The notes below the pieces were generated by a model that made no database searches, was not told where the DNA came from, and was given only the letters and a program-made list of their open reading frames with translations. 64,000 bases of DNA from Lepidodermella squamata (taxonomy: Eukaryota; Animalia; Gastrotricha). Shown here in pieces: positions 12,953 to 64,000 of the stretch. How positions within the stretch are numbered: the first letter of the stretch is position 1; every line of letters begins with the position of its first letter. A program made the position numbers and the translations under genes. The stretch covers positions 248,001 to 312,000 of the forward strand of contig JBLDXI010000015.1 in assembly GCA_047495785.1 (NCBI GenBank). The letters are read 5' to 3'.

Positions 12953-15900
12953 CTACTTGTTGAAAAGTTTCACAAGACATTTCAGTTGATAGTCATCAGG
13001 AGCGTGACGAAACGGTTGCTGTCCATCCAACCGATAAGACGCAACATGCAAGGTGTTTTTCACCGAATAACCATGAATTTTTTCCTCGATCTCCTGCGTG
13101 GCCGCATGCGACGAAACGGTTATCACACCGTCGAAGCCTAGCGATTTAGCCAGGCGTAAAAATTCCGTCTCCAGCGCGTTTAAAATCAACGACCGTTCAA
13201 CAGGTGATTTTACGTCATTTGCGACTGCCACGAATTTGAAATCGGCGAAACGGCCGCCTCGTCGCTGCAACTCAGCCTTGACCGGGGCTTCGACATCGTC
13301 GTTGACTTGCAAAACAGCTTGGGATAGGCCTAGCGCGACTGCGTCTATGTCGCATGGTGTTGCCATGTCGAGGTTCAGCATGACCCCGGCTATGTGAGGC
13401 TGTTGTGAGATGTTGTTTGATTGCTCCGAGTCGAAACAGACCAGAGAGAGGCCATCGGCAATGAAGTCCTTCCACAGCGCTGTACATAAATAAAAATAGA
13501 CATAAACATAAGCATAAGTCAGGTGGATGATATCTTCAAGAGCTTTGAGGGAGCTAGAGAGGTCCATGCATGGAACCTCACAGAACTAGACCCTTTTGAG
13601 TCTGCAAAATCGGTTCGGAACATAGCCGTACTTCTAGGATCCTGCTTCATTCACTGGTTTTGCAATTTGGGTATAAATAGTGGAAAAGTGGCATGGCAAC
13701 TTGGAAAATTTGGTACAAAGGCGGTTGCAAGGGCAGCTTTGATCTTCGAGGTAAAACTCCTAGTATACCGAATCCCAGGGCACTTCGGGTTTCAGTGTCG
13801 ATGATGAAGTGAAATGCCTGCAATTGCGAAGAATCAGAAGCCCAAGAATCTACAATTCAGTAGAGGAAACCAGTGTGGAGCATATTTCCAGTTTACTGTT
13901 TTGTCTCGAATTATCTTGCCTGGACCCCCTGGAAAAGGGGTACGATACCCCCAGTGCGCGACGTAGGATCCTCGAACTAGGGGGTATTTTCATGCCAAAA
14001 ATGTATGACGGTGAAGTTTCCAGCCGGAAGTGAGAGAGGGAGGAAGGGGGGGGGGGGGTACAGGGGTAGCTCTAACGATCCTGGCAAAAAAGACCCGAAA
14101 AAACCACACGGACCTTATATGCTAAAATTCGAGGCTGAAAATACCCGATGGTACCCTCCTATAGCTGGAGGATCCTTCTTCGCGCTATGGGTCAAATCAC
14201 ACAAATCGATTTGCAAGGTTGACAAGAGAGGTCGCCATCTTTTTCCCAAGTTATGTAACTTTGTACCAACTTTTTTGTAACTCCCCCAAGTTTTCCGCCT
14301 AGCTTAGTAACTTCTCACCTCGCATCATTTTTGCGAAAGTCGTTTTCGGCGTAGCGTTCATCACATCGAGCGGGTTCGTCGTAACAAACGCATCCGAAAT
14401 GACATCGACCACCTCATCCGTCCTCTCGGGGCCAACATCAACCAACCGCGCCAGTTTGTACCGGCCATAGGTCACCATCGGCATAGCACCCGTGCTGCTG
14501 CGCGGCGCCACGGCCGGCCTAGGCGGCGGCGGGGGCCTGTTCGCCTGTTGGGTGCTGGGTGCTCCGGGTGCTCCGAGGGTGTTCAGAAACTCGGCGAGCG
14601 ACTTCGCCGCCAGCAGCTGGTCCAAATCCGCCGAAGCGTGACCGGCCTGTTGCAGGTACGCGATGGCCATGACAGCGTTCAGCGAGTTGCCGCCCATTTC
14701 GAAGAACGACCGACCGCCGTCCAGCGCCTCGACGCCCGGGTGACCCAGCGCCCGGGCGATGGCGTTAGACGCCGCGCTCGCCGCAACGGGTTGCTTCGGC
14801 GTTTTCCCCATCCGTTCGGTGTAAATTTCGATCAAGCGACGCCGGTCGACTTTGCCTGTCGCTGGTTGAAGGGGTAGAGTTGGACCTTCGATGGGTAGGG
14901 CTTCGAACTGAACGTAGTCGGCGAGATATTTTCGCGTTTTGGCAATTATTTCGGCCGGCCGTAGCGTTGATGAATTTGCGTAGAATGCGATAAGGGCTAC
15001 GTCGTTAGTACCTGTTAGGCGAATTAAGGATACAAATAAGACAATTTTTCCCGAAATTGAAATTGAAAAATCTGAATTAAAAAATTTTAAGAATTTTAAA
15101 AAGATTTTAGAATTGTCTAAGAAATTCAAAAATTAAAAAATTTGCAAATTTGAAAATTCAAAAACTGTAAAAATTTGAAATTTCAAAAAATTTAAAAATT
15201 CAAAAATTTAAAAATTTAGTTTTGCGTGAATTTTTTTAAACTGCCGGTATTTTGAGTGTGCAGCCGAAATATTTACCTGGTCTTGGAACTGCAAGCACAG
15301 CAGCTTGGCCATTCAACTGCGGGCACTGCGTAGTAATCGCGCGTTCGAGCTCAGCCAAGCTGATCTTCTGGCCTCGCAACTTCACGATGCCATCCTTTCT
15401 GCCCTCGTACACCAGCCGGCCATCGACAATGCGGGCGTAGTCCCCGGTACGGTACAGCACCGCGTGGTTGTTCGGGTTGCTCCCGGCCGCAGCCGTGAAC
15501 GGGTTCCGCACAAAGGCGTCGACGGCTGCCCCGGCGCCCTGGGTCGTCGACGCCGAGACGTAGCGCGAGGCGACGTTGAGGCCCGAGACGAAAACTGCGC
15601 CCAGCTGCCCAGGTGAGGTGACTAATTGATAGCTGTTGGACGAGGATGAGGGCGATGATGACTTCGATGACTCGGAATCGTCGGCTAGCAGGTAGATGTT
15701 GGTGTTGTAGATGGGCCGGCCGATGGATAGCTTGTAGTTGACGGTTGTTCGTTCGACTTCGTCTCGGGAATGCAGCAACTGGAATGTCACGTCACCGGTA
15801 ACCTGTTTCACGCAGAATAAGGTTCCAACGTTAGTAATTCACGAAGAAATGAGACTGATAGAAATCATTAAAGGACCTTAATTGTCCATTCCTTTTTACT

Positions 15901-18900
15901 CACTTCACATAGAACCCCATAAGCCCAATATATTCTCTCAAATTTACTATTTTTAGCTGATTTTAAATTTAGGAATTTCTTCATATTTCATTTTCAAAAT
16001 TTCAAAAAATTTTTAAAACATCTCAATTTCAAAATTCAAAATTTGAAAGACTCAATTTTAAATTACTTTTAAAATTTCAAAATTTCAAATTCAAATTCAA
16101 AAAATTCAAAATTTCAAAAAATCTTTTTCATGAGCATTTTAAAATTTAAAATTTTAAAACTTCTTAAAATTCGGCCAATTGCTATTCTTAAAGCCTGATT
16201 TGAATTGAAATTTGAAAAGACTCGATGTTGTTCCAACTCACCTCAGTTGAGCCGTAGAAATTAGCGAGCGTGCAGTGGGGCAGGGCGTCGAAAAAGCGGA
16301 GCGCCAGCGCGTGCTGCAGCGCCTCGCCACTGCACACGACGAGCTTCAAATTCTTCAGATTCTGCACACCTGGTTTGTGCAAACTCGCGAGGTACGTCAG
16401 CATCGAATCTAGAAGGGACGGCACAAGGACGAGCCGAGTCACGCGTTGCCGGTCGACAATCGGCAGCAGTTTCCTGACATCGCCCGAGGTCGATTTATCG
16501 ACGACTATTATACGAACGGCCTCGAGTAAGGGGCCGAATGTTTCTGTGAGGTGGTCGACGAATAGGACGGACCTTTTTGAGAGGCAGCAGTCGCCTGGGC
16601 GGTAGGCGATTTCGAGCCATTGCCACGACAGGCGGTTTAGGATGTTGCGGTGAGAGAGACACACGCCCTTTGGCACGCCGGTTGAGCCGGAGGTGTATAG
16701 GATGATGGCGAGGCGGTCGGTGGGCGACAGGCCTGAGTCTGGGCTCGGGCTAACTGGGTCAGCGCCAACATTCAGTTGAAGCTGAAATGAAAAAATCGGA
16801 ATGATAATAGCGAAAAATTCTTAGAAAATTTCAAAATCTTTCTCATAATATCGAAAATTAGGAATTGGGAAAATACAATGTTTCCCTTATATGTATAAGA
16901 GACGCGAGCAATGAAAAGGATTCAGAAACTCTAAAATGATAGTCGAAGTCACATCTCATGGCCAGAAAAAATTCAGAAAAATTCAAAAAACAAGGTTCAC
17001 GAGAAAAGTAACCAAGTATGTCACTTGTTAATGGGATTAAAGAGGTCGGGAGAAATTCGGTCCAACAGGGTAAAATACCGACAACTACCGGCCCAGTTGC
17101 CATCGGGGTTTTCCGGGTTTTCTGCAAGAAATGTCTTATTTCTTCGGTTAAATCGCAGAATACACATGGAATATCCTCTGCCTCTGTCACGCCAATAGCT
17201 AAAAAACCTAATTCTAAAAAACCTATTGATTATCGCCCTATCTCTCTCACCTCCGCTGCTTGTCGTACCCTTGAAAAAATAGTTAAAAATGCAATTCTAG
17301 ATTTTTTACTAGCTAACTCTATTATCACTTCTGAACAACACGGTTTTCTTCTACGTAGATCTACTGCTTCACAAATGCTAGAATGCACCCACGACTGGTT
17401 CTTTGCCTTGGAATGCGGCGAGTTTGTCGATATTTTATACATAGACTTTGCCAAAGCTTTTGATACCGTTTGCCATTCCAAACTTCTTAAAAAACTAGCT
17501 CAAATAGGTATACAGGGTGATCTTTTGAATTGGATATCCTCTTATCTCTCTAACCGTTCACAATTTGTTGTAGTTAATAATTCTTCAAGCTCACACTCGC
17601 CGGTTACCAGTGGGGTTCCTCAAGGTTCCGTCCTTGGCCCCTTGCTCTTCCTCATCTACATTAATGATATCGTCCCTATCTTACCAGCTGGTGTCACAAT
17701 TAAACTCTTCGCCGATGATTGCAAGCTTTACATTAAATTCTGCTTTAATAATGCTGCTTCTTCTGTCTCGAGACTATCATTAGCGCTTGATAATATCTTC
17801 GCCTGGATAAACGACTGGCAGCTCAGCCTTTCTATTGACAAATGTGGCGTGCTTCACCTAGGCCGTAACAATCCTCAATTTTCTTATACTCTTGGTTCAC
17901 ATCAACTTTCTATCTGTCACTCGTATAAAGACCTAGGTTTGATTATTGATGAAGATCTCACGTTCCGCCCTCATTTTAATACTATTGTTACCAAAGCTTA
18001 TAACTGTGTCAACGCTATTCTTAGAGCCTTTCATGGGCAGTCGCCTTCCGTTCTCACATGGGCTTATCGAGTCTATTCTAGGCCTCTACTCGAATACCTT
18101 CCTTCGATTTGGTCTCCTTACAAAAAAGGCGATATTGAACTCATTGAAAATGTTCAAAAATATTTTACTCGCCGTGCTTTAGGCTTCTCGTCGCACGATC
18201 TCAACCGCCCTTCTTATAAACAAAGGCTTCTAATTCTCAAACTAGATTCTTTGGAAAAACGTCGCATTCTTTTAGATCTCGCCCTTTTATACAAAGTTTA
18301 CTACAAAGCTATCGATTCGTCAATCTCCTTTTATATCGAGCCTCTTGAGACAATAACTCGCGGTCATACTCATCGCCTTAGATATCGACGACCTGATGGT
18401 CGATACCGCAATGCTACCTCTCCTCTTTTTGCCAACTATTTTTTAAATCGTGTTTTACCCATTTGGAATGAATTGCCTGCCTATGTGTTTCCGTCCACGG
18501 ACAATTTCGATTCCAATCTTAAATTTTTTAAATCAAAAATATGTAAACTTGACTTTTCTAAACACTGCACTCTCGACAACTAAATTTAAATACATTTTCT
18601 ACCTAATTTCTCTATGATTTTGATATATGTTGACTCTCCTCTTGACTGTTCTATACGCTATCATATTGACTACTACACGGTTCAGAGTTAGTGGCCTGCG
18701 GGTCCTTCTGTATCCTCGAATCTTTTTTACTGCTTAACTCCCCTGATGAATTTATTTTTCGAAATAAAAAAAAAAAAATAAATAAATAAATATTCTCTCC
18801 GTAGATTTCATTTTTAAAAATTAATGGAATTTCCCATAAAAACTTCAAATCTAAAACGTTGCTAATCTAAAAAATCATTTCGCACCTAAATTGCTGGAAA

Positions 18901-20749
18901 AAATAGTAAAGCCAGTTCCAGCTAGCTACAACGAATCTTCGAATATTCATTCGATATTCGATATTCTAATTCGAAGATAAATTAAAAAAAAACCGAAGCT
19001 TTCATCTACAGTAGTTTTGCGTTAAGCCGGACTTTCATAAGCCGGACTTGCGTTAAGCCGGACCAATTTTTAGTGAATTTAACGTCAAAAAGTCCGGCTT
19101 TTAGAGCAAAGGTTTAGGAAAAATCGCGAAAATCGCACTTTTCATTCTGCTTCTGGGTGGCTTTGACGGACAAATTATTTTTATTTTTGAAAACAACTGT
19201 TTTGAATCGTGGTTTAACCTAAAATCCAGCTTACTATCCCCATTTTGTCAATTCCAAGTAGTTCATTGATGTAAAATGCTGACACCTTAGAATACCTTTT
19301 GAATAAATATGTGTTCAAAAGCAGTATTTTTTAAGCCTGACCGGTCCGGCTTACAATTTGGCGGACTTGCATTAAGCCGGACTAAATCGTCTGGCGCGGG
19401 TCGAGTCCGGCTTAACGCAAAACTACTGTAATTTCCTGAAACCACTTTCAAAAGATCCTGATGAGCCAAAGCTCGAAAGTCGAACTACAAATATTTGTCA
19501 GCAGCGAAATTTTTTTTACCGAATCTGAAGCAGCTCTTACATCAGGCACTCCACCAAGCATAAACACATTTCATATTCCAATTTTTAGCTATTTTCAACT
19601 AAAGAGGAGTTGGGAAAGGTCTCAGAATAAAATATTGAAAATTCGATCGTAGTTCAACCGTATTTTTTATGGCTACTCGTGACTCCCGAAAAATCTAGAA
19701 AATTCATTCATCTGGAAAACTTCGGCCACACCACGAATACGCGAGGATCCTGCTTATCACTTCCCGCCTAGATTCAGGAATTAAAATTCGATAAAATTCA
19801 GGAATTTTGCGAGGATTGAGGATTTTATAGATTGGTATAGTCGAAAATTTGTGTACTCGGAAAATTCCAGCGTGATTTTCAATATTCCTCATCGGAATTT
19901 TCCCAGCACATTCAAATATTCGAATGGGCCTTCGAATGGGTATTTAATTTTGATCATTGAATTAAATTAATTAAATAAAAAAAGAATAGTAATCTAAATT
20001 TGAATTACCGCTGAATTGATGACGACCAGCGTCTCGTCCTTGGTCAAATCCTGATCCGACTGCTCGGTATCCTGCATCAACAGGCTCTCGAAATCCGTCA
20101 CATGAAACTTCGTCCGCCGAAACAAATTCTGAATCCGTGTCCTGTAGTCCGGATCCTGCGCCGAGACGACAACGCCAAACGGCCGATTCTCGTCACACAT
20201 GGCTAGAATGCGGTGATCCGGCAACGCATGATCGAGCACGAGCACAACGCCGCCGAGCTTCCAAATCGCCAACATGGCGACGATGCGAAACTCAGACGGC
20301 GGCATCCAGATGGCGACAACGGGTTGGCTCTTGACAGTCTGCGTCAACTCGAGCGAGGCCGAGCGTGACGTGGGCGGCGACGACGAGGCCGAGACGAGCA
20401 GGGTGTTGCGCAACTGACGAGCCAGCAGATTCGCGTACGAGTTCACCTGGCCGAACGTGAGCACGACGCCCTGTTGCCCGTCGGGGCCTTCGCGCTGTGA
20501 CGCCAGGTTGACAATTGCTGGCAGCTCGGCGACACTGGCGCCGTCTCGCTGCGACCGAACCGTGGCTTCGAAGTACTCGTGCAGGGTGCGCTCGTCCGGC
20601 AGGTCGACGTCTTCGCCGCGCAGCACGGCGAATTCGGCCGCGGCGTTGCTCGGGGTGGACTCGTCGCCCTGGGCGCCGTCGCCTAGGTCACCCGTGTCGC
20701 CCAGGTCCTGGTCGGCTCCGGAACCTTCCGAACTCATCGATTTCGGCAT
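12953..20749 (-). CDS. ebony: Ebony-like single-module NRPS (beta-alanyl-amine synthetase; A-T-amine-selecting domain), about 1008 aa. Exons: 20749-20009, 16781-16242, 15802-15277, 15011-14319, 13479-12953
   Basis: The exons sum to 3027 nt in frame. A-domain motifs: LTFGQVN, ILYTSGSTGVPKG, FVD, CSGEAL, NFYGSTE/VTGDVT, IGRPIYNT, YRTGD, GRKDGIVKLRGQKI, TGKVDR. Carrier domain: FFEMGGNSLNA. C-terminal AANAT-like domain (DAF..TNPL, GLSLVCFD, IAGVMLNLD, AKSLGFDGVITVSSH..TQ) and no condensation domain. Confidence 0.9.
17175..18790 (+). mobile_element. 5'-truncated CR1/L2-group LINE with an uninterrupted RT reading frame, antisense in ebony intron 1
   Basis: DYRPISLTS, QHGF, YIDFAKAFDTV, GVPQGSVLGPLLFLIYINDI, LFADD, YKDLG, RPLLEY..WSP, IENVQKYFTR, RGH, RV..WNELP; stop at 18583, 3' UTR and A/(AAAT)n tail. 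Confidence 0.92.
19009..19428. mobile_element. Tc1/mariner-type MITE in ebony intron 1
   Basis: TIR CAGTAGTTTTGCGTTAAGCCGGACT / AGTCCGGCTTAACGCAAAACTACTG, TA TSD, subterminal taagccggac repeats. Confidence 0.85.
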
Positions 20750-30678: not shown

Positions 30679-32988
30679 TTAAATGTTGCTCAAATTGTTG
30701 CTACGAGTTGCTTTTGGATCCACTTCATTGAGATTATTCCCATTTTCGCTCATCCTCTGCAGGAAGCTGCTCGAAGCCGAACCAGCAATCAGGAAAACCG
30801 ACAGCAGTATGTCATATTGAAAACTGGGCGCCATTAGATAGCCAATGGCCACCGAAGCGCCGTACAGAGTTGCCGTAACTCCCATCGAAACATACGCCGA
30901 TTTTATAGCCGGGTACATTTTCAAGTGCCGCATCATTGGTTGTAATTTCAAAACGAAAATCAAGCCGAGGAAAATCAAGCCGAAGTCGAAGCTGACAAGG
31001 AATCCTACCCAAGCCATTGCCCAGTTCGATTTGCAAATCTTCTCACGAGTTATCAAGTAAGAGTCTTCGATTTCGTTATACTGAGCAGCCGAATCTTCGG
31101 CTGAAATCGCTACAACAGGGTCTGATATCAGCCAGGCTAAGACTACGGCGACACTGATCGCTGTTGCGAGTAGTGTCAAAGCAGCTAAACGTTTCGCCCC
31201 AACTTCAACATCAATCAAATCGATTTGCTCGGACTTGACAGATACATCCGTGAAACAGGTCGTGCCGGCTGTTTTCGTGCGTTGTAGCCTCGACTTTGGC
31301 CTCTTGTCCCTATATTTGGGGTGCTGTGCGGCTATAACGTTATAGTAATTGATTACACTAATCACTAAGCCGCTCAAAAACGATGAAACACCTATAGCAA
31401 GTGCAACTGTAGCTGATTGACAAACAGCATTTGAACGCAGGTTGAACGGCTTAGCTATCAACAGTACAGACAGCGAAAACAGGAAATAGCTCGTCAAGGA
31501 GAGTAAGTTCTTCACCATGCGTTTCCGTATCGTTTTGTCGAAAACGTATTTCTTGGCAACGAATACAGCTTGATAAATGATCAGGCTTGTTGCAACAATG
31601 GCAAGGATCACGTAAACCGGCAATGGCACGCCTTCTTCTTGGATGACAATAGCAGGCGAGTCGTGAGGCAACGAAGTCATAGGTTGAACTGCTGTGAACG
31701 TAAAAATGTTAGTCGTCTTCAAATTCGTTGCATTCGGCATCAAATTTCCGACGTAGCGAACGGCGAGGCCTTTGCCCTGCTCCCACGTCATGACAACTTG
31801 AGGCTCGTAGTCCCATTCGAGGCGGTTCGAGTAGCGAAAGTTGGCGTATCTCAAGCTTTCGTATCTGATCGAGCTGACAGATTGATTGGCGATCTTCATA
31901 ACAAGCTGCGGTTGGTTTCGATAATCTTTGAGACTCATATTAAATGCAGAAAGCTTTTTCTCTGTTTCATTGAGCGCGACAACTGCAAGGAGAGCCGCGT
32001 CGTAGCAAGAACCTCGAAACAATTCGCCACTTCTCGACAGATTTTGGCCCCGTTCTGCTAGTACCTTCTCAAATGCTACCTGCGTGTTTCCTAATTCGTC
32101 GAATCTGGACGAAACAATAGGCGCAGCGTCGATCGAGCCGATAATCACGAGCGATTTCAATTGCTCGAGGTAATGATCCCTAGTGCAGCCGCGGGGAAAA
32201 ACTTGTGTAGGCGAGGGATCCAAAAATACGATCGCTTGGATGAAAAACATGAACCGACGCCCAGTTATCCCGTTTTTGTAGGCTTGGCATAGGAAACCTA
32301 TGGTTACTTCAGGAGACGACGCGATGTCAAGCGCGAAGATTCTAACGTCGCTTTTCAACATAAGTTGCAGAAGCTCGTCAGTAAGTTCGTGATACGCCTC
32401 GAAGTGCTGGACTTTGATTCCAGCTGTCGTTGCAACTTCATGAAAGAAGCTAGCTGTTTGAACTGAATGTGGATTGCCTATCTCTGCGATGATTGCCAGC
32501 TTGTTCCAAGGCGTGAATTGCCTGATAAAGTGAAGACGAGCGATCAGGCCGAGATCAGCCGGGCCTCGAACGCGGAACATGTTAGGGTAGAGATCGCGTC
32601 TGGCTATGAGACTTGGCGCAGTGCATGCCGCGGCGATCATCACCATGTTCATGTGATGGGCGATGGAGCCCCAAGCTCTACAGCCAGCAGCTGCGATTGT
32701 GCCAACAGTGATAGGGGCTATGTAGTTCTCGCTTGATAGCAAATTTTCATCGACGAATTTAACACCCTCCGCAGCGGCGTTAGCGCTGAACATCACCTCG
32801 TCCTTGATCACAAATTTGATGCGATAGCCAGGCAGTAAATTGCGTTCGTTGACGGTTTCTTCGACCTGGCCTATCGCAAAATTGCACCGCTCAATAAATG
32901 CAGGCAGTTGGGTAAGTATCAGCAAGTTGCTTGGTTGTTGAGCCATGGCAATGTGCACGAGAGAAATAATCAGTAAGATTTTGTTCAT
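30679..32988 (-). CDS. Intronless class C (GABA-B-like) GPCR: signal peptide, Venus flytrap domain, 7TM, no cysteine-rich domain
   Basis: ATG at 32988 (MNKILLIISLVHIAMA). VFT motifs: AIGQV..VNERNLLPGYRI, LIARRDLYPNMFRV, WNKLAII, DVRIF, FLCQAYKNGITG, YDAALLAVVALN. Seven hydrophobic segments with TM3 and ECL2 cysteines and W..SDP. Confidence 0.85.
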   Translation of the reverse strand: MNKILLIISLVHIAMAQQPSNLLILTQLPAFIERCNFAIGQVEETVNERNLLPGYRIKFVIKDEVMFSANAAAEGVKFVDENLLSSENYIAPITVGTIAAAGCRAWGSIAHHMNMVMIAAACTAPSLIARRDLYPNMFRVRGPADLGLIARLHFIRQFTPWNKLAIIAEIGNPHSVQTASFFHEVATTAGIKVQHFEAYHELTDELLQLMLKSDVRIFALDIASSPEVTIGFLCQAYKNGITGRRFMFFIQAIVFLDPSPTQVFPRGCTRDHYLEQLKSLVIIGSIDAAPIVSSRFDELGNTQVAFEKVLAERGQNLSRSGELFRGSCYDAALLAVVALNETEKKLSAFNMSLKDYRNQPQLVMKIANQSVSSIRYESLRYANFRYSNRLEWDYEPQVVMTWEQGKGLAVRYVGNLMPNATNLKTTNIFTFTAVQPMTSLPHDSPAIVIQEEGVPLPVYVILAIVATSLIIYQAVFVAKKYVFDKTIRKRMVKNLLSLTSYFLFSLSVLLIAKPFNLRSNAVCQSATVALAIGVSSFLSGLVISVINYYNVIAAQHPKYRDKRPKSRLQRTKTAGTTCFTDVSVKSEQIDLIDVEVGAKRLAALTLLATAISVAVVLAWLISDPVVAISAEDSAAQYNEIEDSYLITREKICKSNWAMAWVGFLVSFDFGLIFLGLIFVLKLQPMMRHLKMYPAIKSAYVSMGVTATLYGASVAIGYLMAPSFQYDILLSVFLIAGSASSSFLQRMSENGNNLNEVDPKATRSNNLSNI

Positions 32989-34272
32989 TCTTATTGCTTG
33001 TCTCAAAAGAGAGATTCAGAGCAGAATCTGTGTTTGTAAGCTTTTATACCCCCGCAATGCATTAGCTGAGCAATTTGAACAGGAATTACGGCTGCCATCA
33101 AGCTGGGAATTTTTGTCTGTGATCAACCAAGCTTTTATAGCCCCGGAAATACTTTTGATTCGACACGCCTTTTTCCGAAAGAAGTTCTCAACCTAGAACA
33201 GCGGCTCCGCTAGAACAAGAACCTGCTGAGACTCTCTGTCGCGAATGAATGTCAGTGAATTTGAAATTCTAGTAAGCGCCTACAATTTCTCCAATCCTCC
33301 AACGGCAATCGCTCAATCTGATCTTCTAATCTGCGCAATGAACGGAAAGAAAACATGATTCTCAGTTGTTGAACCCTCAACATACATTTTTTACATTTCG
33401 GATGTGTGCATTAGGAAATCCGCACTACACGCTCCACGCTGTTACGCCTCTCCAAGATGAGGCATGACACTGCAATCCGGAAGGAAGTCTACCTTTAGTT
33501 GTTTTTCCTAACTTTCCAGTTCCACCAAAGTCCTCGGCATATTAGCAAGAGAGTTTAAGTTCCCATCGCAGTGATTTCAGCCTCCTGACTCCTGACGTAA
33601 GGATGCTTTACTGGTGTAATATATGTGGCATCATGCAGTAATGTTTCCGATTTCCCTCACACGTATGGCCGTATTTTCATATTTGCCGATTTCAACCTTG
33701 TTTTCAGGCATTGCTTTCTGTTTAACAGGGTGAAATGCTAAATTAAATTGACTGGATGTCATAAAAAAGGACAAGTGGATCTCCTATTCCAAGCGCGTTC
33801 GTTTAGACCAAATTTTCTTGTTCTCAACCGACGTCCTAATCTGGTTTCGGCAATTAGTATTGAACAAAAAACCGCACAGTCACGCACGAAATGTCCAGGG
33901 TTACACGTGATCAACGTGATCAGATTATCTTCATATCACGGACAGCTCAGTTAGTAAACGGTACTCTTAAGCATTCCCATGCAGCCATAATTTAATTCTT
34001 CAATTTAAATTCCCGGAAAATGCTTTGCTTCTAGTAATCTTTCGGATTCAACTTTGAGCACACGTTGGTGAACGATTTTTACTTGTAATTGGAAATATCG
34101 ATCGGGCTATGTATCTAGTTCACTGGGCGCAGCGTCACAGTTCAAATCTCAAATGACAGCTCTTGTTTATCGATTTTCAGCCCTGACGCTTTCAGCCTGT
34201 GTTGCTCTCTCAAGTATGACACAGTTATTCGTGAAATAAGCGTAAATCCCAATAACAACAATTTGCCGAAAA

Positions 34273-37195: not shown

Positions 37196-40100
37196 ATGAA
37201 GCGTTTGGTTACGTTGCTACTCCTCGCTTCTTCCGTCGCGTGTGGATCGCATTTCCAACGCTATGAAAATAAAATAATCAGTCCGACTACGGCAAGTGGC
37301 CTGCCTAACCTAAATAGCCACACAATTCTTACAAAATCAGCACAGGAAGAATCGATATGCGCTGCGTTTTGTTCAAGCAATCCGCAGTGCCAATCGCTGC
37401 AGTTTCGAAAAAGTACAAATACGTGCCTGCTGTACAGCATCTCGCCGGAGGGGTCGAGTGTCGCGAGACTGGTGGTGAACTCTGACTTCACTTCAATGAC
37501 ACTAACTGGGCGTAGTCAACTAGCGAAATCGGCGCAGTGTTCGAGCAATCAGTGCGTGACGAGTTGGTACTTCAATGCGATCAGGCGTGAAGTCAGCCGG
37601 CCAACTTGCTGGAAAGAGTATGCGAGTGATCCCACGCCGACGCGTGCAGTGGAAACACTCGACTACGACACGAGTTACATCAGCGACCTCGGCTACTCGT
37701 CTTCATCGGTTAACAACCTGACGGCGACAGGGTACACCCTGGCTAGAGAACCGCCATGCTACGCTCGAATCACATCGGGCCATTTGAGCCACGCGTGCCT
37801 AACGATGTCGCCACCCATTGGATCTTGGTTCAAAATCGACCTGCAACGCTATGCCTGGCTGACCAAGATGGAGTATCACTGTACTGACTCTAGCTGCATC
37901 AGCTCAATGCGGATTGAGTACAGTTTAGACGATGGTCAATATCAGCAACTCATGTCAGGACGCGGAATTCTACAGGTATGCACATCATTTTACTTCATAT
38001 GGCAATTAACAATGTGTACCCACCAATTCACAGTAAATAATATAATGATTCAACAAATTGTGCAAATTACCGTATATTCCGTAATAGCTTCAGGGGGCAT
38101 TGTAATTTCAAAGCCTCGAAAAAGGGGGGTTGTAAACGGGACGTGTTACAATTGCGAGCATGCGACTCTATTGTTTCAAAGCAAGTTTTCAAGTGTTAAA
38201 ATTGAGTAAAAATAAGAATAAATTGATAATTTTCGAACTACAGCTTGTAAAGTCAACAGGTTTTCATCAAAATCGAGAACGTCATCGTTCGATTGCGAGT
38301 TTTCAGCCATTTTTATGCAAATTACTGAAATTTTAAAATGTTAGTTTTCTTCAAATCATGAATGCTAGGAAATCGACAGCTACTTTGGCAATTTTCGTTG
38401 CTGAACTTCTCTCACTCGGCTATGTTTCGCCATTTTCTATCAAACAAGCACATCAAACGCCTCGAAATGGAATTTCAAAACGATAGGCGCTATTATTTTA
38501 GAATGCGATTTTCAAAGTTTGAATTTGAATTTAGGTCCCGGGTAGCTATTGCGAGTATGAGGCTTTAATATTTCAAAGGGCTTAAAAAGGGGGGTTGTAA
38601 ACGGGACGGGCGGTAATAACGGGTATATGAAGCTATTACGGAATATACGGTAAATTGAAATTGTTTGCGATTACATGTAGACATTTCACGATTGTTGATT
38701 GTAAATGTTACCGCAAAAAATATTATTCATAGCCCTTTCTCAATTCTCTAATCAATCTTAGAACTCGAAGTGGGTGTAATATTAGTTAGCAGTTTGCATC
38801 GCCCACTCAAATTGACCTCTCAAAGTTTAGGCGTTGCTATTTGTGTTCCGAATTCTTGTTTCTATTTCTTAGCTGGTTAATGGTACTATTGGCGAGATAG
38901 TCACTTTCGAGCTCTATCGGCCAGTTATGCTGCGTCACTTCCGTGCTGTAATTTATGCCGAAAACGGGACGGGCATTTACTATCGATGTGCCCGGTTTCG
39001 TATATACGGCTGCGCCGCAAATTGCTTGGATCCTCTTGGCATCGAAAATGGAGACATTGCCGATGGCCAAATTACAACCACAGATTACATATCCCAAAGC
39101 TACTTTTCCCGGCTGAATTGGGGCATGGCCGCTGTTAACAACTACAACAGCTTGACGATCGACCTTAGAAAGCAGATCTTCGTTAGGGCGGTTCTCGTTC
39201 AAGGATGTGATCGGCTGAACTCATGGGTAACTGCATTTGCCTATGAATACAAGGCGACGGCAATGGACAACTGGCTCCAGCTTCAAGATGCCTCGGGGTC
39301 GCTGGGATTTACTGGCAATACTGATGCGAAGAATGTAGTAGTCAACATGTTCCTGAACGTTATTATTGCCCAATTTTTCAAAATTATTCCAATATTTCTT
39401 TCATCGACTAATTGCTACCGATTTGAGTTGCTTGGATGCAAGAGTGAGTTAGCGTTCAATTTATTTAATTAATTGCTACATTTAATCAATTTTATCTAGC
39501 AACACCCGTGTACTCGCGAAACATAGCAAGCGGGGCAGGCACTTCATACTCGGCATTCGATTCAACGTTATCTGCAACCAATGCGATCACCCAGAAGCGA
39601 GATGTTCGGCTACAGCATCAGCAGAACTGCACTAGGATTACTGGGAGCCCAGTGAATTCAGGCCGCCCCTATGTCACGATTGGCTTGGGCGAGAATAGAA
39701 CGATAACTTCGGTGGAAATTGTGACACCCAATTTACCGGGCGCTGTCACTCTGAACCCTGATGGCCTGTGGCTCTTCGACTACCAGCGAGGTGGCGATGA
39801 TTTGTCTAGTAACGGCAATCACGCCATTGTTCCGCCGAGTATGAGCTACGTGGCTGGGTTCGATGGTCGGCCTCTTGGGGCTCTGCAGTGGCCGGGGGCA
39901 GATCAAGCGATTCTTGTTCGAACAAATAACATCAATATGATAGATCTGAACAACGGCTGGACTTACGCAGCATGGCTTTACTTCCCAAGTACTGGTACTG
40001 CTGGCGACTTTTTCCCAATGAAATGCAAGGCTAAAAGCTGGTGAGTCAACCTATATCCACTGTGATTTTGTGTTAAAACGTTAGCAAACAGGACACCTGG

Positions 40101-43100
40101 GACTTGGAGATTCAACATACGCTTCAAGTCAACGCGCGAGATAACTGTTGACTTCACTACTCATCCGACAAGCAGCTGGCAGTGGCCTTTGAAGAACGCT
40201 ATTGCGCCGTACGATCGCTGGTTCTTCTTCGCCCTAACTGTCGACTGCCGAAGTGGCGTGAGTCGCGTCTACTACGACACATACGATCGAGCAGTTAACT
40301 ACCAGGGCTGCCTGGCCCCAGACGTTTTCATGCTAACTGAGTATTTCGAAATTCGCGGCAATTGGAGTGGCCGCATCGCTTGCATGCAGTTCTACAAGCG
40401 AGGCCTCGACCAGTCTGAAATTGAACAAGCCTCGCGATGCCCTTGGATGAGTAAGTATCACATTGAGCGAAACATCAATAAATTTATCTTGTTATCCTTA
40501 GCCCCAACGCCCCTTGCTATTTATCCCTTTGCTTGCACGTTGAACGACGTGACTGGCCAAGCACCGAGTTTCACTTCAAATGGCAGCCCTCAATGCTCGA
40601 AAATATATGGATACACGTCAACGTATGTTTTTCTCATAAGGGAAGGCATATTTTCCTATTTGATCGGCATTCCAGAGCTTGGAATCTTGCAACAACGAGT
40701 GACAACCTACAGATGCAGATTAACACTGCCCCGGGCAACATTCTCGACCTCCAGTATTCGTTCACTGTTCTGCTTCACATAATGCAACCCAGTGCTGCTG
40801 ATGGCGTGATTCTGGGCTGGTACACCTCAGCGACAAACCCAGGAATTTATATATTCATTTCTGGTGGTAAATTGGCATTTTCCGTGAAATGTCGAAGTGC
40901 TGCCGTATCAACAACCACGAATTTTACAACCTCGTTACAACCGATGCCTAATCATTGGTCTTACATAGGCCTGATCTACGACAGTGAGGCTGGTACCCTG
41001 CTTCTGGTTCTCGATGGCACAGAAAGTTCAGTGATTTCCTTCCCGTGCTCCAGCGGCCTTCAGACCAATTCAAGCCCGTTTCGAGTCGGGGGTTCGATGC
41101 CTATCAGTGTTGCTTGCCTCCATTTCTACAAAGCAGCTTTGAATCGGAGGCAGATCGCTTCGTTAAAGCGTTGCCCGTCGACTGCGACGTCAGACATGAC
41201 AGCTGTTGCTAGCGCACCGTTGGATGGCTCTTTCGGCAGTTCCTCCATCACTAATCCAACAGCTGGAGACATTATAAATTCATCTAATTGGAATCCAGGT
41301 GAGAACCTCAAATTCTCTGGTGCTCCCCTTATTTTATCTTGCGGTCTTAGAACTAGGAAGCGGTGATGCTTATTAAATCTAACAGCTGCTTTGCAAATTA
41401 TTCAACTTGCTTTGACTTCAAATGATTCTATTAATGATAAACAGGTTCTGGCTTCCCTTGGCGAGGGAACACAAATGACGTCTGGGGCCAGCAAAGTTCA
41501 TCTGCAGCTAACTACTATTACTCTGTACCTGGGCGAACTGACTTGGTATTCGGCAATGGAACGAATAGCCAGACACCGTACACCTTCGGCATATATTTTT
41601 ACAGCAAAGAACCGACTAACGGTGTGATTTCGCCTGTTCTCACGCTGAACCAGCTTTCAACGGACTATGAACAAGTTTTCATCTCGCTGACGACTCCGAG
41701 TTCCATCGTGTACCAGGCGATAATGGAGAACCCAACTGGCAGTTCGACTACTCCATACTCGCGAAATGTAGCAAACGTCAGCACGTATTACAACGTTTGG
41801 CGGCACTTTATGATGTCGTTCGACATGGCGCCTGGGGCTATGCGCTTCGAAGGTTTCTACGACGGCAGTCGCGTCGCTAGCTACGATATGCCCGACGTGA
41901 GGCCCCGGGCGCTGCAACGGATAGGCATCGCTCGTCAACCTTACTGGGGCTATTGGGCGAAAGGCGAGTTTGCCTGCATTTCCGTGTTCCAGGGCTACTT
42001 GAACCAGTATATGGCAATGGAAGTCGCTACGCAGTGCCCTGGACCGGTATCACGTAAGAGGGGAAACCTTAAGGCTTAATGAAGCATATTGAAACGCTTA
42101 TTCATTTTATCAGTTCAAGGTCACGTTTGCGAGAGCGACCTTACAGTTCGTGCTACTGCTATTCCAAGTTCAGTGTTCGTATCATCAGCTGGGGTGAAAT
42201 TCGACCAATTCCGTCTCCAAAATCGATGGGTTGGCAACGCGACAACAGCTGGATCGATCGCTTGCTGTTGGCAACCAGCTGCCTCTGATTCAAGCCCGAT
42301 TCTAATGCTTGATCTTGGAGAAGAGACCACAATAGCTTCAATCGCGACCCAGGGGGACTATTCTACTGGGTACTACGTGACGAGTTTCAGAATGTCATAT
42401 GGGACGCCTTTCAATTACTTCTTGTGGGTCTACGAATTGCCGAGACCAAGCGTCATCAAAGTGAGCCAACTTTAATAAAAATTCTGTTCGAATTTTGCTC
42501 TCGAATGGATACAGGTGTTCACTGGGAACGAAAACAGCGATGGAGTTGTTTGGAATGCAATTCGACCTTACATTTCAGCTAGATATGTCAGAATACACCC
42601 GTTAACCTCAGTTGGCGGAGTGGGAATGCGGATTTTACTCCGTGGTTGTCCAGGTGAGGCATCAACTTGCTATGAGTTACGAAAATGCAATGATTTTCTC
42701 AAAGATTTCTTCTGCAAGACTGAGCTGAATGATGGGAAGAACAGCAGTGTAACGGTATCCAGCACGCAAACACCAGCCATTGAATCTCAAACCTACGTCA
42801 TCGGCAGCACCGTCGATTTCCGACCTCTGTTAACCGATCCTCAGCCTTTCTATCAAATCACGTTCTCGGTAATGAAAATCCTATCGGCTGTCATAGTCCA
42901 ATGCAGTGTTGATTCATCATCCTGGATTACAAAATATCACCTGATGGCTAGTTTGGACGATATCAAGTGGACCGGCTACGTTTGGCCTCATAATGGGTCA
43001 AGACTTCGAATATTCGATGGCCCATCAGCTTTGAGCAACCCAAATCCTTTCATTTCCTACTTGAGCCCTTATCCTCTTGTAACGATGGCGGTTCGACTGG

Positions 43101-43849
43101 TTATTGACGACTTTAATGTTGCTCCTTATGGTCGATTCGGATTCAAAGGCTGCTCTGCCCCTACAGCAGCAAACAAATACGCTTCGATCCTCACAACTCC
43201 TGTTGGAAGAGTTTCTGTTCGCCTGGGCTCGACTCGCCCCAACTCATCTTCAGATGCGGACGCACAGACTCAGTGCTCTCAGTTAGGCGGGATTCCGAGC
43301 GGAAGGCGGGTTCAACTCATGTGCGAGAATGGCCCTATAATTGGTAGGTTTCTAACTATCGTTGGTGCCAATGCTGGATCGACAATTGAGATTTGCCAAT
43401 TCGGAGCCTACTACGACAACGGCACAGACTATGCCAGCTTCAAAAATTTAGCAACTAACATCTCATCGATACCAGCTACAACTCTCATGGCTCTGACCAC
43501 CCCGGGTCCTAATAGCGTTGGAGCATCGTTGACCACTGGCTGGCTTCTGGTCGATCTTGGCGTGTCGTATTCCGTCGGCAAGGTTGTTGTGGTCACTCAA
43601 CAAAGCGGTTCATGGGTCGTCGATTCAAACCCCGGTAGCTGCCAGCTGACGATCCGAGTTGGAACCTCAACGAGTAGCAATCTTCAATCAAATCCTGTTT
43701 GCGACTTTTGGCTTGAGGGAAACCGCGTGGCTTTAGTTCAGGGACAAGCGCTGACTTTCCATTGCACCCCACCGTTGAATGGCCGATACGTTAGCCTAGA
43801 AAAAGAAGGCACTTCTACAATTCAAATTTCACGCTTCATGGTTTTTTGA
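37196..43849 (+). CDS. Large secreted mosaic lectin/adhesion protein: signal peptide, PAN/apple, 2x F5/8C, F-type lectin N-half, about 3x LamG/pentraxin-like, 2x F5/8C, F-type lectin C-half, second F-type-lectin-like domain. Multi-exon; first exons 37196-37975, 38873-39443, 39500-
   Basis: MKRLVTLLLLASSVAC signal peptide. PAN: CAAFCSSNPQCQSLQF..CLL. F5/8C: WFKIDL, RFRIYGC, CLDPLGIENGDIADGQIT, IATQG..YVTSF, ARYVRIHP..MRILLRGC. LamG-like: WFFFALTVD, WSYIGLIYD, IACMQFYKRGL. F-type lectin: GRFLTI and GRYVSL. Some internal junctions were not fully resolved. Confidence 0.78.
38070..38650. mobile_element. pogo/Tc1-type MITE in intron 1 of the lectin gene
   Basis: TIR CCGTATATTCCGTAATAGCTTCA / TGAAGCTATTACGGAATATACGG, TA TSD, internal direct repeat aaaaggggggttgtaaacgggacg. 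Confidence 0.85.
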
Positions 43850-62285: not shown

Positions 62286-64000
62286 CCATAAATGCAAAGG
62301 GTCGGTAGACAGGCGTTTGAATTTACGGATGGTTGCTTTCATACTGGGCTGTTAAAGAGCTGGCGATGAATCATAAGTGCGTCGCTTAGTTTTTTCTTAG
62401 TTGCTAAGGCGATGATGATTTTACTGGTTAGCCATATTATAAGACAAGCCGGAACGAATTCTGTCAACTTTCATTGGTTTCAATGGGTTGTAGTATTTGT
62501 AAAAGCAAAAAACTTGAAAAATCGCGTGCGCACGATATTTTTGATTCGCAATCTCAATGAGCTTGAATAAAAAACAACGCTCTGGTAAAGATCGAGAGGT
62601 TGGGTGTTGGGTGAGATAACTGTGCAAGTTAAAAAAGCTAGATATCCGCCCACAGGGCTGAAATTTCGTTGCTTAAAGGTGTCCTCTAGGTGTCAGATGT
62701 TCCACTATAGCCTAAGTTTTGGGATAACGACGAATTACGTATTGGCTTAGCTATGTATCGGTCCTAGCTAAGCTACAAAGAGAGAAGAGAGGCAAAAAGA
62801 GCTCATGGCTATGAATTTCTCGCTGTCGCGGTTGGAACAGTATTTGAACTAGGGCAAATCAATGAACTTTCTGTGTTTTCTCAAATATTGTTAGGGAAAT
62901 GTGCTGCTTGAATGCAATTACGGAGTAACACTAAAAGCTGTTTCATGGTTCACTCAACCGCTAATTCGACTCATCAACATTTTGCACAGACTTTAGTGTA
63001 CAGAATACAGCTGGATACGCCACATCGATGTCTGCCGTCTGCCCTATAAGGAAGCTTTAATAAGCACTAGAATGAGGGGCAGAGCATCCTGCTAGGGGAG
63101 GAAGCTATGCCTGCGCTATCAGCTATAAGCCATACATTATGTATTAGGTGTTGTTGATCTCGCCATTATTATGTCTGGTGTCGTCTGTGGTCTGTGTTTC
63201 AAAAAGCAAACACTTGAAAGGTGCTTGCTAATTTAGCTCATACATGCCCTAATAAAATGATCCTGGAATATTTAGTATAGACTGACGTGTCAAACAGTGA
63301 TGATAGATCATCGATTTACTGTGGACATTGAATCATCAGCATGAAACAAGTTCGAGTTAGCTCTTTAATTGAACAAATTACGGCAAAAATCCCCAAGCCC
63401 TGATAATCCCCCAATCCCCCAACAAAAATGGGTCACTGCCGATATCACGCGAAACGACCTCAACGGAGTTGATTGCGTACCACAAGCAGCCTTACTTTCA
63501 GATTGAATTCAAAGAGGCGAAACTAATAAATACCGTTTCAGTTCAATCGAGTAGGAGCAGTGCGGCTTCAATCACGAAGTACCATCTGCTGTCAAGATTA
63601 GTAAATTCTACCAGCATATATGGCTAGGCTATGTCTGACGAACGGTTCGACCCTTAGGACATTCGAAGGCCCTACTGGGTCCGATTCCCAGCCGGTCGCA
63701 AGCTATTTGAACCCAGCTCTTGTTGCAGTGGCAGTTCGGCTGTATTTGTGTATGACGTCAATATTCAACCCACTGGTAGATTGTAACTATGTGGACGACA
63801 TCATGAGACGTACCAGGACGCAGCGGCTTCGAAGCTCCAGTTTTCCGGGTTTGCGTAAAAAATCACGTGATGTGTTTAGCAGAAGTGTGCATAATAATTA
63901 CTTTCGTTGGCGAATTTTTTATTTATTAAAAAATAAAATTGCCATTGATATAAAAATTAAAATTGAAAACAGTATAACTGATCTTTTCGCGACCCGTTTT

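Follow-up and report, generated by a model that had tools for sequence, protein, structure and literature searches.

A putative F-type lectin fold split at its CDR4 loop by a five-domain insert in a predicted secreted protein of the gastrotrich Lepidodermella squamata

We analysed a 64,000-nucleotide (nt) stretch of DNA from the gastrotrich Lepidodermella squamata (assembly GCA_047495785.1, contig JBLDXI010000015.1, positions 248,001 to 312,000), which is referred to as the window and supplies the coordinates used below. A predicted gene on its + strand would encode one secreted multidomain protein in which an F-type-lectin-like domain is divided into an N-terminal and a C-terminal half (the N-half and the C-half), lying on either side of five complete domains. 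We consider it reasonably probable that this split domain, of the F-type lectin fold, re-forms in cis around the stretch between its halves, a 1,022-residue insert in the loop known as CDR4. The gene and the two halves were positioned as follows (aa, amino acids; ORF, open reading frame):

37196..43849, + strand: whole gene of nine exons, built from stop-to-stop ORFs and GT-AG junctions, with a predicted secreted product of 1,761 aa
37196-37975, 38873-39443, 39500-40040, 40092-40450 and 40502-40622, + strand: exons 1-5
40676-41298, 41445-42053, 42114-42460 and 42515-43849, + strand: exons 6-9
39520..39726, + strand: N-half (aa 458-526, 69 residues), matching custom profile positions 1-64, with Cys494 at 39628-39630
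43208..43414, + strand: C-half (aa 1549-1617, 69 residues), matching custom profile positions 85-134, with Cys1611 at 43394-43396

The region has the character of eukaryotic coding DNA on the + strand, with long ORFs interrupted by short introns. Splicing of these ORFs through GT-AG introns gave a joined coding sequence (CDS) of 5,286 nt over the nine exons that contains no internal stop. Seven of the introns measure 51, 51, 53, 54, 56, 60 and 146 nt and one measures 897 nt, all with GT-AG borders. In the product, a signal peptide is followed by a PAN domain, two F5/8C domains, the N-half, three LamG-like domains, two further F5/8C domains, an 18-aa linker, the C-half and finally a complete F-type-lectin-like domain. 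Secretion of the product is probable, because no other transmembrane-like segment was apparent in the 1,761-aa product outside the signal peptide. That both halves belong to one polypeptide is supported by the CDS staying open over nine exons and by its collinearity with a homologue, L001, described below; a single transcript carrying both halves is what the gene model predicts.

The halves were detected with a custom profile of 138 positions, built from 117 canonical F-type lectin units that were taken from tandem F-type lectin proteins. Against the whole 1,761-aa product, this profile matched the N-half over positions 1-64, the C-half over positions 85-134 and the complete domain over positions 44-136, with one further weak contact of 4 bits on an F5/8C domain. 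When the halves were joined in silico, a single match over positions 1-134 was obtained with a score of 34.5 bits, the C-half then spanning positions 74-134. Scored separately, the N-half reached 16.8 bits as compared to a maximum of 5.5 for its shuffled versions, and the C-half reached 21.0 bits as compared to 5.2; none of 1,000 shuffles attained the real score in either case. In addition, the halves from the two species, L. squamata and the source of L001, were compared with the canonical alignment (140 template columns) by hhalign. The joined halves were matched over template columns 2-138 with 98.4% probability (E 4e-15), the N-half alone over columns 2-64 with 77.8% probability (E 1.9e-5) and the C-half alone over columns 75-138 with 97.6% probability (E 4e-12). 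MAFFT aligned the C-half column by column with canonical C-halves, the two invariant cysteines included. The ESM Atlas placed both pieces beside galactose-binding-like or fucolectin-like domain fragments, the N-half beside PF22633 fragments. Pfam recognised neither half alone, single-sequence phmmer searches of the PDB gave no match for either half, and BLASTP found no similarity between the C-half and the neighbouring complete domain; among the Pfam, PDB, BLASTP, custom-profile and hhalign searches, only the latter two detected the halves.

These comparisons confirm, at the level of sequence, that the pieces correspond to complementary, non-overlapping halves of one F-type-lectin-like domain placed around complete domains, and the whole-domain profile match assigns this domain a predicted F-type lectin fold. 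A preliminary sequence-only reading had placed the halves at 39517-39732 and at about 43200-43415. Both were recovered by profile, shuffles and hhalign at the positions listed above, and the profile comparison of the joined halves that it had proposed corresponds to the 98.4% hhalign match over columns 2-138. Its estimate of about three LamG and two F5/8C domains, roughly 1000 aa, between the halves also proved accurate: the intervening stretch comprises aa 527-1548, i.e. 1,022 aa, as delimited by Pfam and a LamG profile. Two of the three LamG-like domains have a Pfam Laminin_G_3 match, and the third was found by a profile of the first two.

In the profile alignment, the strand '..VseVvitn' closes the N-half, and the match is taken up again by the C-half at 'kgaeirvgn'. 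The profile segment absent between them, 'rkdccse', corresponds to residues 79-86 of the eel agglutinin, RGDCCGER, in loop CDR4. Arg79, Arg86 and the vicinal Cys82-Cys83, all part of the fucose site, lie in this loop, and the fucose-binding motif H-X24-R-X-D-X4-R/K comprises His52, Arg79 and Arg86, according to PMC5712786, which also gives Cys50-Cys146 and Cys108-Cys124 as the disulfides of the eel agglutinin. In the window protein, the His52 position is occupied by Arg (NCTRIT), and Arg79 and Arg86 are absent, the RGDCCGER segment being replaced by the insert. The cation-binding motif h2DGx is absent as well, with NAITQ in the window and NAVKN in L001 where the profile has AvDGn. The loss of the fucose-binding residues points to a lectin fold without lectin function: the fold is predicted to be kept and fucose binding to be lost. 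C494 (NCT) and C1611 (ICQ) align with Cys50 and Cys146, in the 'sCsht' and 'LCEv' columns of the profile, while C1571 and C1587, both within the C-half, align with Cys108 and Cys124; the candidate structural-disulfide cysteines of the F-type lectin fold are present. The sequence-only reading had set the break at the RxDCC..R loop and had held that the cysteines of the CTHT and LCEV motifs are both retained, and the alignment bears it out on both points.

On the proposed mechanism, the 69-residue N-half and the 69-residue C-half would meet in the same chain and form one beta-barrel. In the window species, this barrel would be pinned by a C494-C1611 disulfide, the equivalent of Cys50-Cys146, which would link the two termini of the insert; the five domains within it would extend, as a closed loop, from the former sugar-binding face. 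With the fucose-binding triad and the calcium motif gone, the barrel would act as a scaffold or clasp, not as a lectin. We infer cis refolding, formation of the disulfide and closure of the insert loop as plausible steps. The domains outside the split domain, to which the following paragraphs refer, were assigned as listed here:

37196..37246, + strand: signal peptide (MKRLVTLLLLASSVACG), read from the sequence
37313..37495, + strand: PAN/apple domain (Pfam PAN_1, E 5e-7)
37736..39439, + strand: F5/8C domains 1 and 2 (Pfam F5_F8_type_C; aligned with L001), domain 1 being broken by the 897-nt intron
39727..43153, + strand: nested insert as a whole (Pfam Laminin_G_3 and F5_F8_type_C matches)
39727-40443, + strand: LamG1, LamG-like
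40444-41198, + strand: LamG2, LamG-like
41447-42043, + strand: LamG3, matching the LamG1/2 profile
42044-42649, + strand: F5/8C-3, with a Cys-rich linker between F5/8C-3 and F5/8C-4
42764-43153, + strand: F5/8C-4 (Pfam F5_F8_type_C)
43154..43207, + strand: 18-aa linker from F5/8C-4 to the C-half, read from the sequence
43439..43846, + strand: complete, uninterrupted F-type-lectin-like domain (aa 1626-1761; phmmer against 1K12, E 0.003)

The complete C-terminal domain is without the fucose-binding motif. As a separate observation, the first intron (37976-38872, 897 nt) greatly exceeds the other seven (51-146 nt) in length and splits the first F5/8C domain, and L001 has no intron at this place. 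It was also observed that P0005, P0010, P0014 and P0026, hits of the representative search described below, represent an F-type-lectin-like subfamily with an extended CDR4 containing two extra cysteines (e.g. ADNCDHTVSKTGCGYKN), and the window C-half (CENGPIIGRF) resembles this subfamily.

A representative search, for which the C-half plus the complete domain served as query, returned the tandem F-type lectin proteins from which the canonical units were taken. It also returned P0008 and P0018, which are adjacent ORFs on a eukaryotic metagenome contig. This locus, L001, has near-identical copies in L003-L005. The L001 homologue was modelled from the second F5/8C domain to its end (1,535 aa), and its product is collinear with the window protein and ~38% identical to it. 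Both halves occupy the same positions in L001, with identities of 34% for the N-half and 32% for the C-half and no large gaps. For the other domains the identity is 22-45%, and for the longer linkers 0-24%; by this measure, the halves are as conserved as the other domains. The core-strand motifs are likewise kept, with PYVTIGLG in the window and PVLTVDLG in L001, and GRFLTIV and GRYLSVV, respectively. Furthermore, L001 has Ala and Ser in place of the equivalents of Cys50 and Cys146, and the Cys108/Cys124 pair is kept. Such a joint loss, here a single event, is what would be expected of disulfide partners that lie more than 1,100 residues apart. We term L001 a collinear homologue because none of its neighbours was found in the window; strict orthology would go beyond these data. 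Besides the L001 ORFs, the representative search found no protein above 31-35% identity. An exon-level search with the window N-half exon found no homologue, searches with the L001 ORFs returned only the queries themselves, metagenome scans with conserved peptide patterns gave no match, and for P0008 only generic F5/8C neighbours were obtained from the ESM Atlas.

The conservation between the two proteins bears directly on whether the halves are mere relics, i.e. whether insertion of the cassette broke an ancestral lectin-like domain whose pieces now serve as linkers or dock separately on their neighbours. Pieces that are as conserved as globular domains in proteins of ~38% overall identity, that keep their core-strand motifs, that score far above shuffles against canonical domains and that have lost a cysteine pair from both halves together in L001 do not fit this explanation well, even though the sugar-binding and calcium-binding motifs have gone, Pfam recognises neither half, the N-half is poorly conserved over its first 45 residues when the window species and L001 are compared, and two non-synonymous changes in this half occur among the L001 polymorphisms. 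On balance, we regard the relic explanation as rather unlikely. Variation within the window species was also available: a second haplotype occurs in the DNA run at about half the depth with its differences clustered at 39182-39231 and 43166-43255, and the source animal of the assembly is heterozygous at these two places. All three allelic differences within the C-half are synonymous, and two non-synonymous ones fall in the linker just before it. This pattern is consistent with constraint, but the sites are few.

The exon structures of the two genes were compared as well. In both of them, each half shares an uninterrupted exon with the end of the insert next to it. In L001, a single uninterrupted exon contains the second F5/8C domain, the N-half and the whole of LamG1, and in both species the last F5/8C domain and the C-half lie within one exon. 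Three intron positions are common to both genes, and the LamG1-LamG2 and LamG3-F5/8C-3 junctions are introns in both. The remaining introns differ between the species, and therefore the ORF runs on without a break across most domain junctions in one species or in both. Conceivably, the split could be a gene-model artefact or a matter of alternative splicing, in that the halves reside in different transcripts or that an insert-skipping isoform joins them. The gene model was built from DNA alone, and the two shared introns at junctions within the insert would suit this idea. However, the nine exons yield an open 5,286-nt CDS through phase-compatible, short GT-AG introns, and the order in L001 is collinear with three intron positions conserved. 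Moreover, near the half boundaries in the window there is only one frame-compatible GT/AG pair, whose donor (CCT|GTGGCT) is poor and which lacks a polypyrimidine tract, and L001 has no GT/AG pair resembling real introns near these boundaries. Judged from these signals, a direct splice joining the halves is unlikely, and we consider an artefact or alternative splicing of either kind very improbable.

The last F-type-lectin-like domain, which is uninterrupted in the window copy, is itself split at the CDR4 loop in L001 (L001:5079-6588). The order there is an N-half (profile positions 1-70), a candidate SUEL lectin domain, an intron and a C-half (profile positions 78-136). The SUEL match covers positions 1-80 of 80 of Pfam PF02140 with an E-value of 6.9e-7 and a score of 30.0 bits, as compared to a gathering score of 31.4. 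The insert contains eight cysteines, and its PDB match, to the latrophilin lectin domain, has an E-value of 0.42 only. The SUEL domain of L001 would represent a lectin nested within a lectin. The sequence-only reading had looked to homologues with other inserts at the same site, and L001 supplies one, in its second lectin-like domain. The five-domain cassette in the first domain of both species and the SUEL insert in the second domain of L001 suggest that the CDR4 loop accepted whole-domain inserts twice in this protein family, and the loop is predicted to tolerate such inserts. More tentatively, and as a possibility to which we give somewhat less than even weight, the CDR4 loop could repeatedly serve, in this protein lineage, as a port where whole binding modules dock, with a small, sugar-blind, disulfide-pinned clasp presenting other lectin-like domains from its former binding face. 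Within the SUEL insert, at L001:6188-6262, about 10 of 14 sites that differ between L001 and L004 or L005 change the amino acid, and this non-synonymous cluster could reflect relaxed or diversifying selection.

The SUEL insert is also relevant to how the halves find each other. In a domain-swapped arrangement, the N-half of one chain would pair with the C-half of another, resulting in dimers or chains of molecules instead of a closed loop inside a single molecule. The sequence evidence for complementarity applies equally to this arrangement, and the data do not separate pairing in cis from pairing in trans; closure within one chain over a separation of 1,022 residues would, in addition, be entropically costly. 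Direct evidence for swapping was not encountered, nested inserts usually close within one chain (PMC13114784), and the single-domain SUEL insert at the same loop of L001 is most simply read as intrachain closure. We therefore think swapping distinctly unlikely and retain re-formation in cis as the preferred reading.

A structure model was obtained with AlphaFold2 for the last exon (444 aa), with an alignment that consisted of the L001 exon and canonical segments comprising a C-half plus the next unit. The predicted local distance difference test score (pLDDT) of the C-half was ~80-91 and that of the complete domain was mostly high. In VIA-align, model residues 331-444 superposed on residues 38-151 of 1K12 with Z 11.0 and a root-mean-square deviation of 2.2 A, and model residues 224-444 superposed on residues 73-288 of the tandem lectin 3CQO with Z 10.7. 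By the latter superposition, the C-half of the model lies where the first 3CQO domain has its C-terminal half. The model, which covers the C-half and the complete domain, agrees with the sequence result.

Several observations weigh against re-formation of the domain in cis. The N-half of L001 matches the profile weakly, at 7.6 bits. The co-variation of the cysteines is a single event seen in two species only, and polymorphism within the species of L001 offers too few sites in the halves to be informative. Cysteine parity was considered as an argument for a disulfide between the halves and dropped, since several other regions also have odd cysteine counts, which makes parity arguments weak. The only public run found (X1) is genomic DNA, and its contigs pass through the introns and contain no joints. 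As to the structure model, confidence in the C-half is partly circular, since the alignment rows are canonical domains, and the C-half is the only one of the two that the model contains. Whether each half could complete its fold with adjacent sequence, which the sequence-only reading had taken as the opposite of its proposal, is weakly addressed: the C-half adopts the C-terminal-half conformation, as proposed, but the flanking F5/8C part was modelled at a pLDDT of ~30 from two alignment rows only, and docking of the C-half on this neighbour remains compatible with the model.

With F-type lectins such as the Anguilla anguilla agglutinin (1K12) and striped bass MsaFBP32 (3CQO), the split domain shares a full-length profile match once its halves are joined, the equivalents of Cys50-Cys146 and Cys108-Cys124, and a neighbouring complete domain that models as an F-type fold. 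It differs from them in that CDR4 (RGDCCGER) is replaced by the 1,022-aa insert and in that the fucose and calcium motifs are gone. The CDR loops carry most insertions and deletions in F-type lectins, and the available part of PMC5712786 describes no whole-domain insert. In a limited literature search, no description of a split F-type lectin domain was found. In the integrin beta subunit, which has a long-range disulfide, the beta-I domain interrupts the hybrid domain and the hybrid domain interrupts the PSI domain. In laminins, an LE module is interrupted by L4 domains. Both are structurally proven cases of small disulfide-bonded hosts that close around larger inserts. Like the protein described here, they are extracellular, and their host module, small and disulfide-bonded, is divided by an insert larger than itself; unlike it, they involve other host folds and one- or two-domain inserts, and they are proven by structure where our case is sequence-based. 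Whole domains in or near a CDR are found in LAIR1-containing antibodies and in bovine ultralong CDR H3. The likeness to these antibodies, in which a binding loop of a beta-sandwich is replaced by an autonomous binding module, is one of analogy only, with the SUEL insert of L001 as the closest parallel; the proteins are unrelated, and the inserts are of somatic origin there and of germline origin here.

Domain insertion occurs in ~20% of multidomain proteins, with inserts that are consistently smaller than their hosts (PMC13114784). The window protein resembles such nested (A1-B-A2) insertions in that other domains break up the sequence of a host domain. Nested insertion itself is known; the unusual point here is the size ratio, the five-domain insert being about seven times as large as its host of ~140 aa. 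As inserts are normally smaller than hosts and usually single domains, the closure of ~140 residues around ~1,020 would be an extreme case if the halves refold. If true, re-formation in cis would test what separation in sequence the halves of a beta-barrel tolerate without losing the ability to fold, and it would provide a test case for structure-prediction and domain-annotation pipelines. Since Pfam sees neither half, such architectures are invisible to routine annotation. In addition, the F-type lectin fold would have been reused purely as a scaffold, and L001 would hold a lectin inside a lectin at the sugar-binding loop.

Elsewhere in the window, no paralogues were found except a separate F5/8C-like coding fragment near its edge (63481-63748), which is 45-53% identical to the fourth F5/8C domain and could be part of a related gene. 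An Rfam scan of the window returned no matches. On the - strand (12953-20749), ORFs that encode AMP-binding and PP-binding domains may represent a gene resembling Ebony or a non-ribosomal peptide synthetase. Between these ORFs lies a reverse-transcriptase ORF (17018-18583, + strand), probably a retroelement within an intron. Finally, a single 775-aa ORF on the - strand (30679-33006) encodes a class C G-protein-coupled receptor (ANF_receptor plus 7tm_3) and, unlike the neighbouring genes, is apparently intronless.

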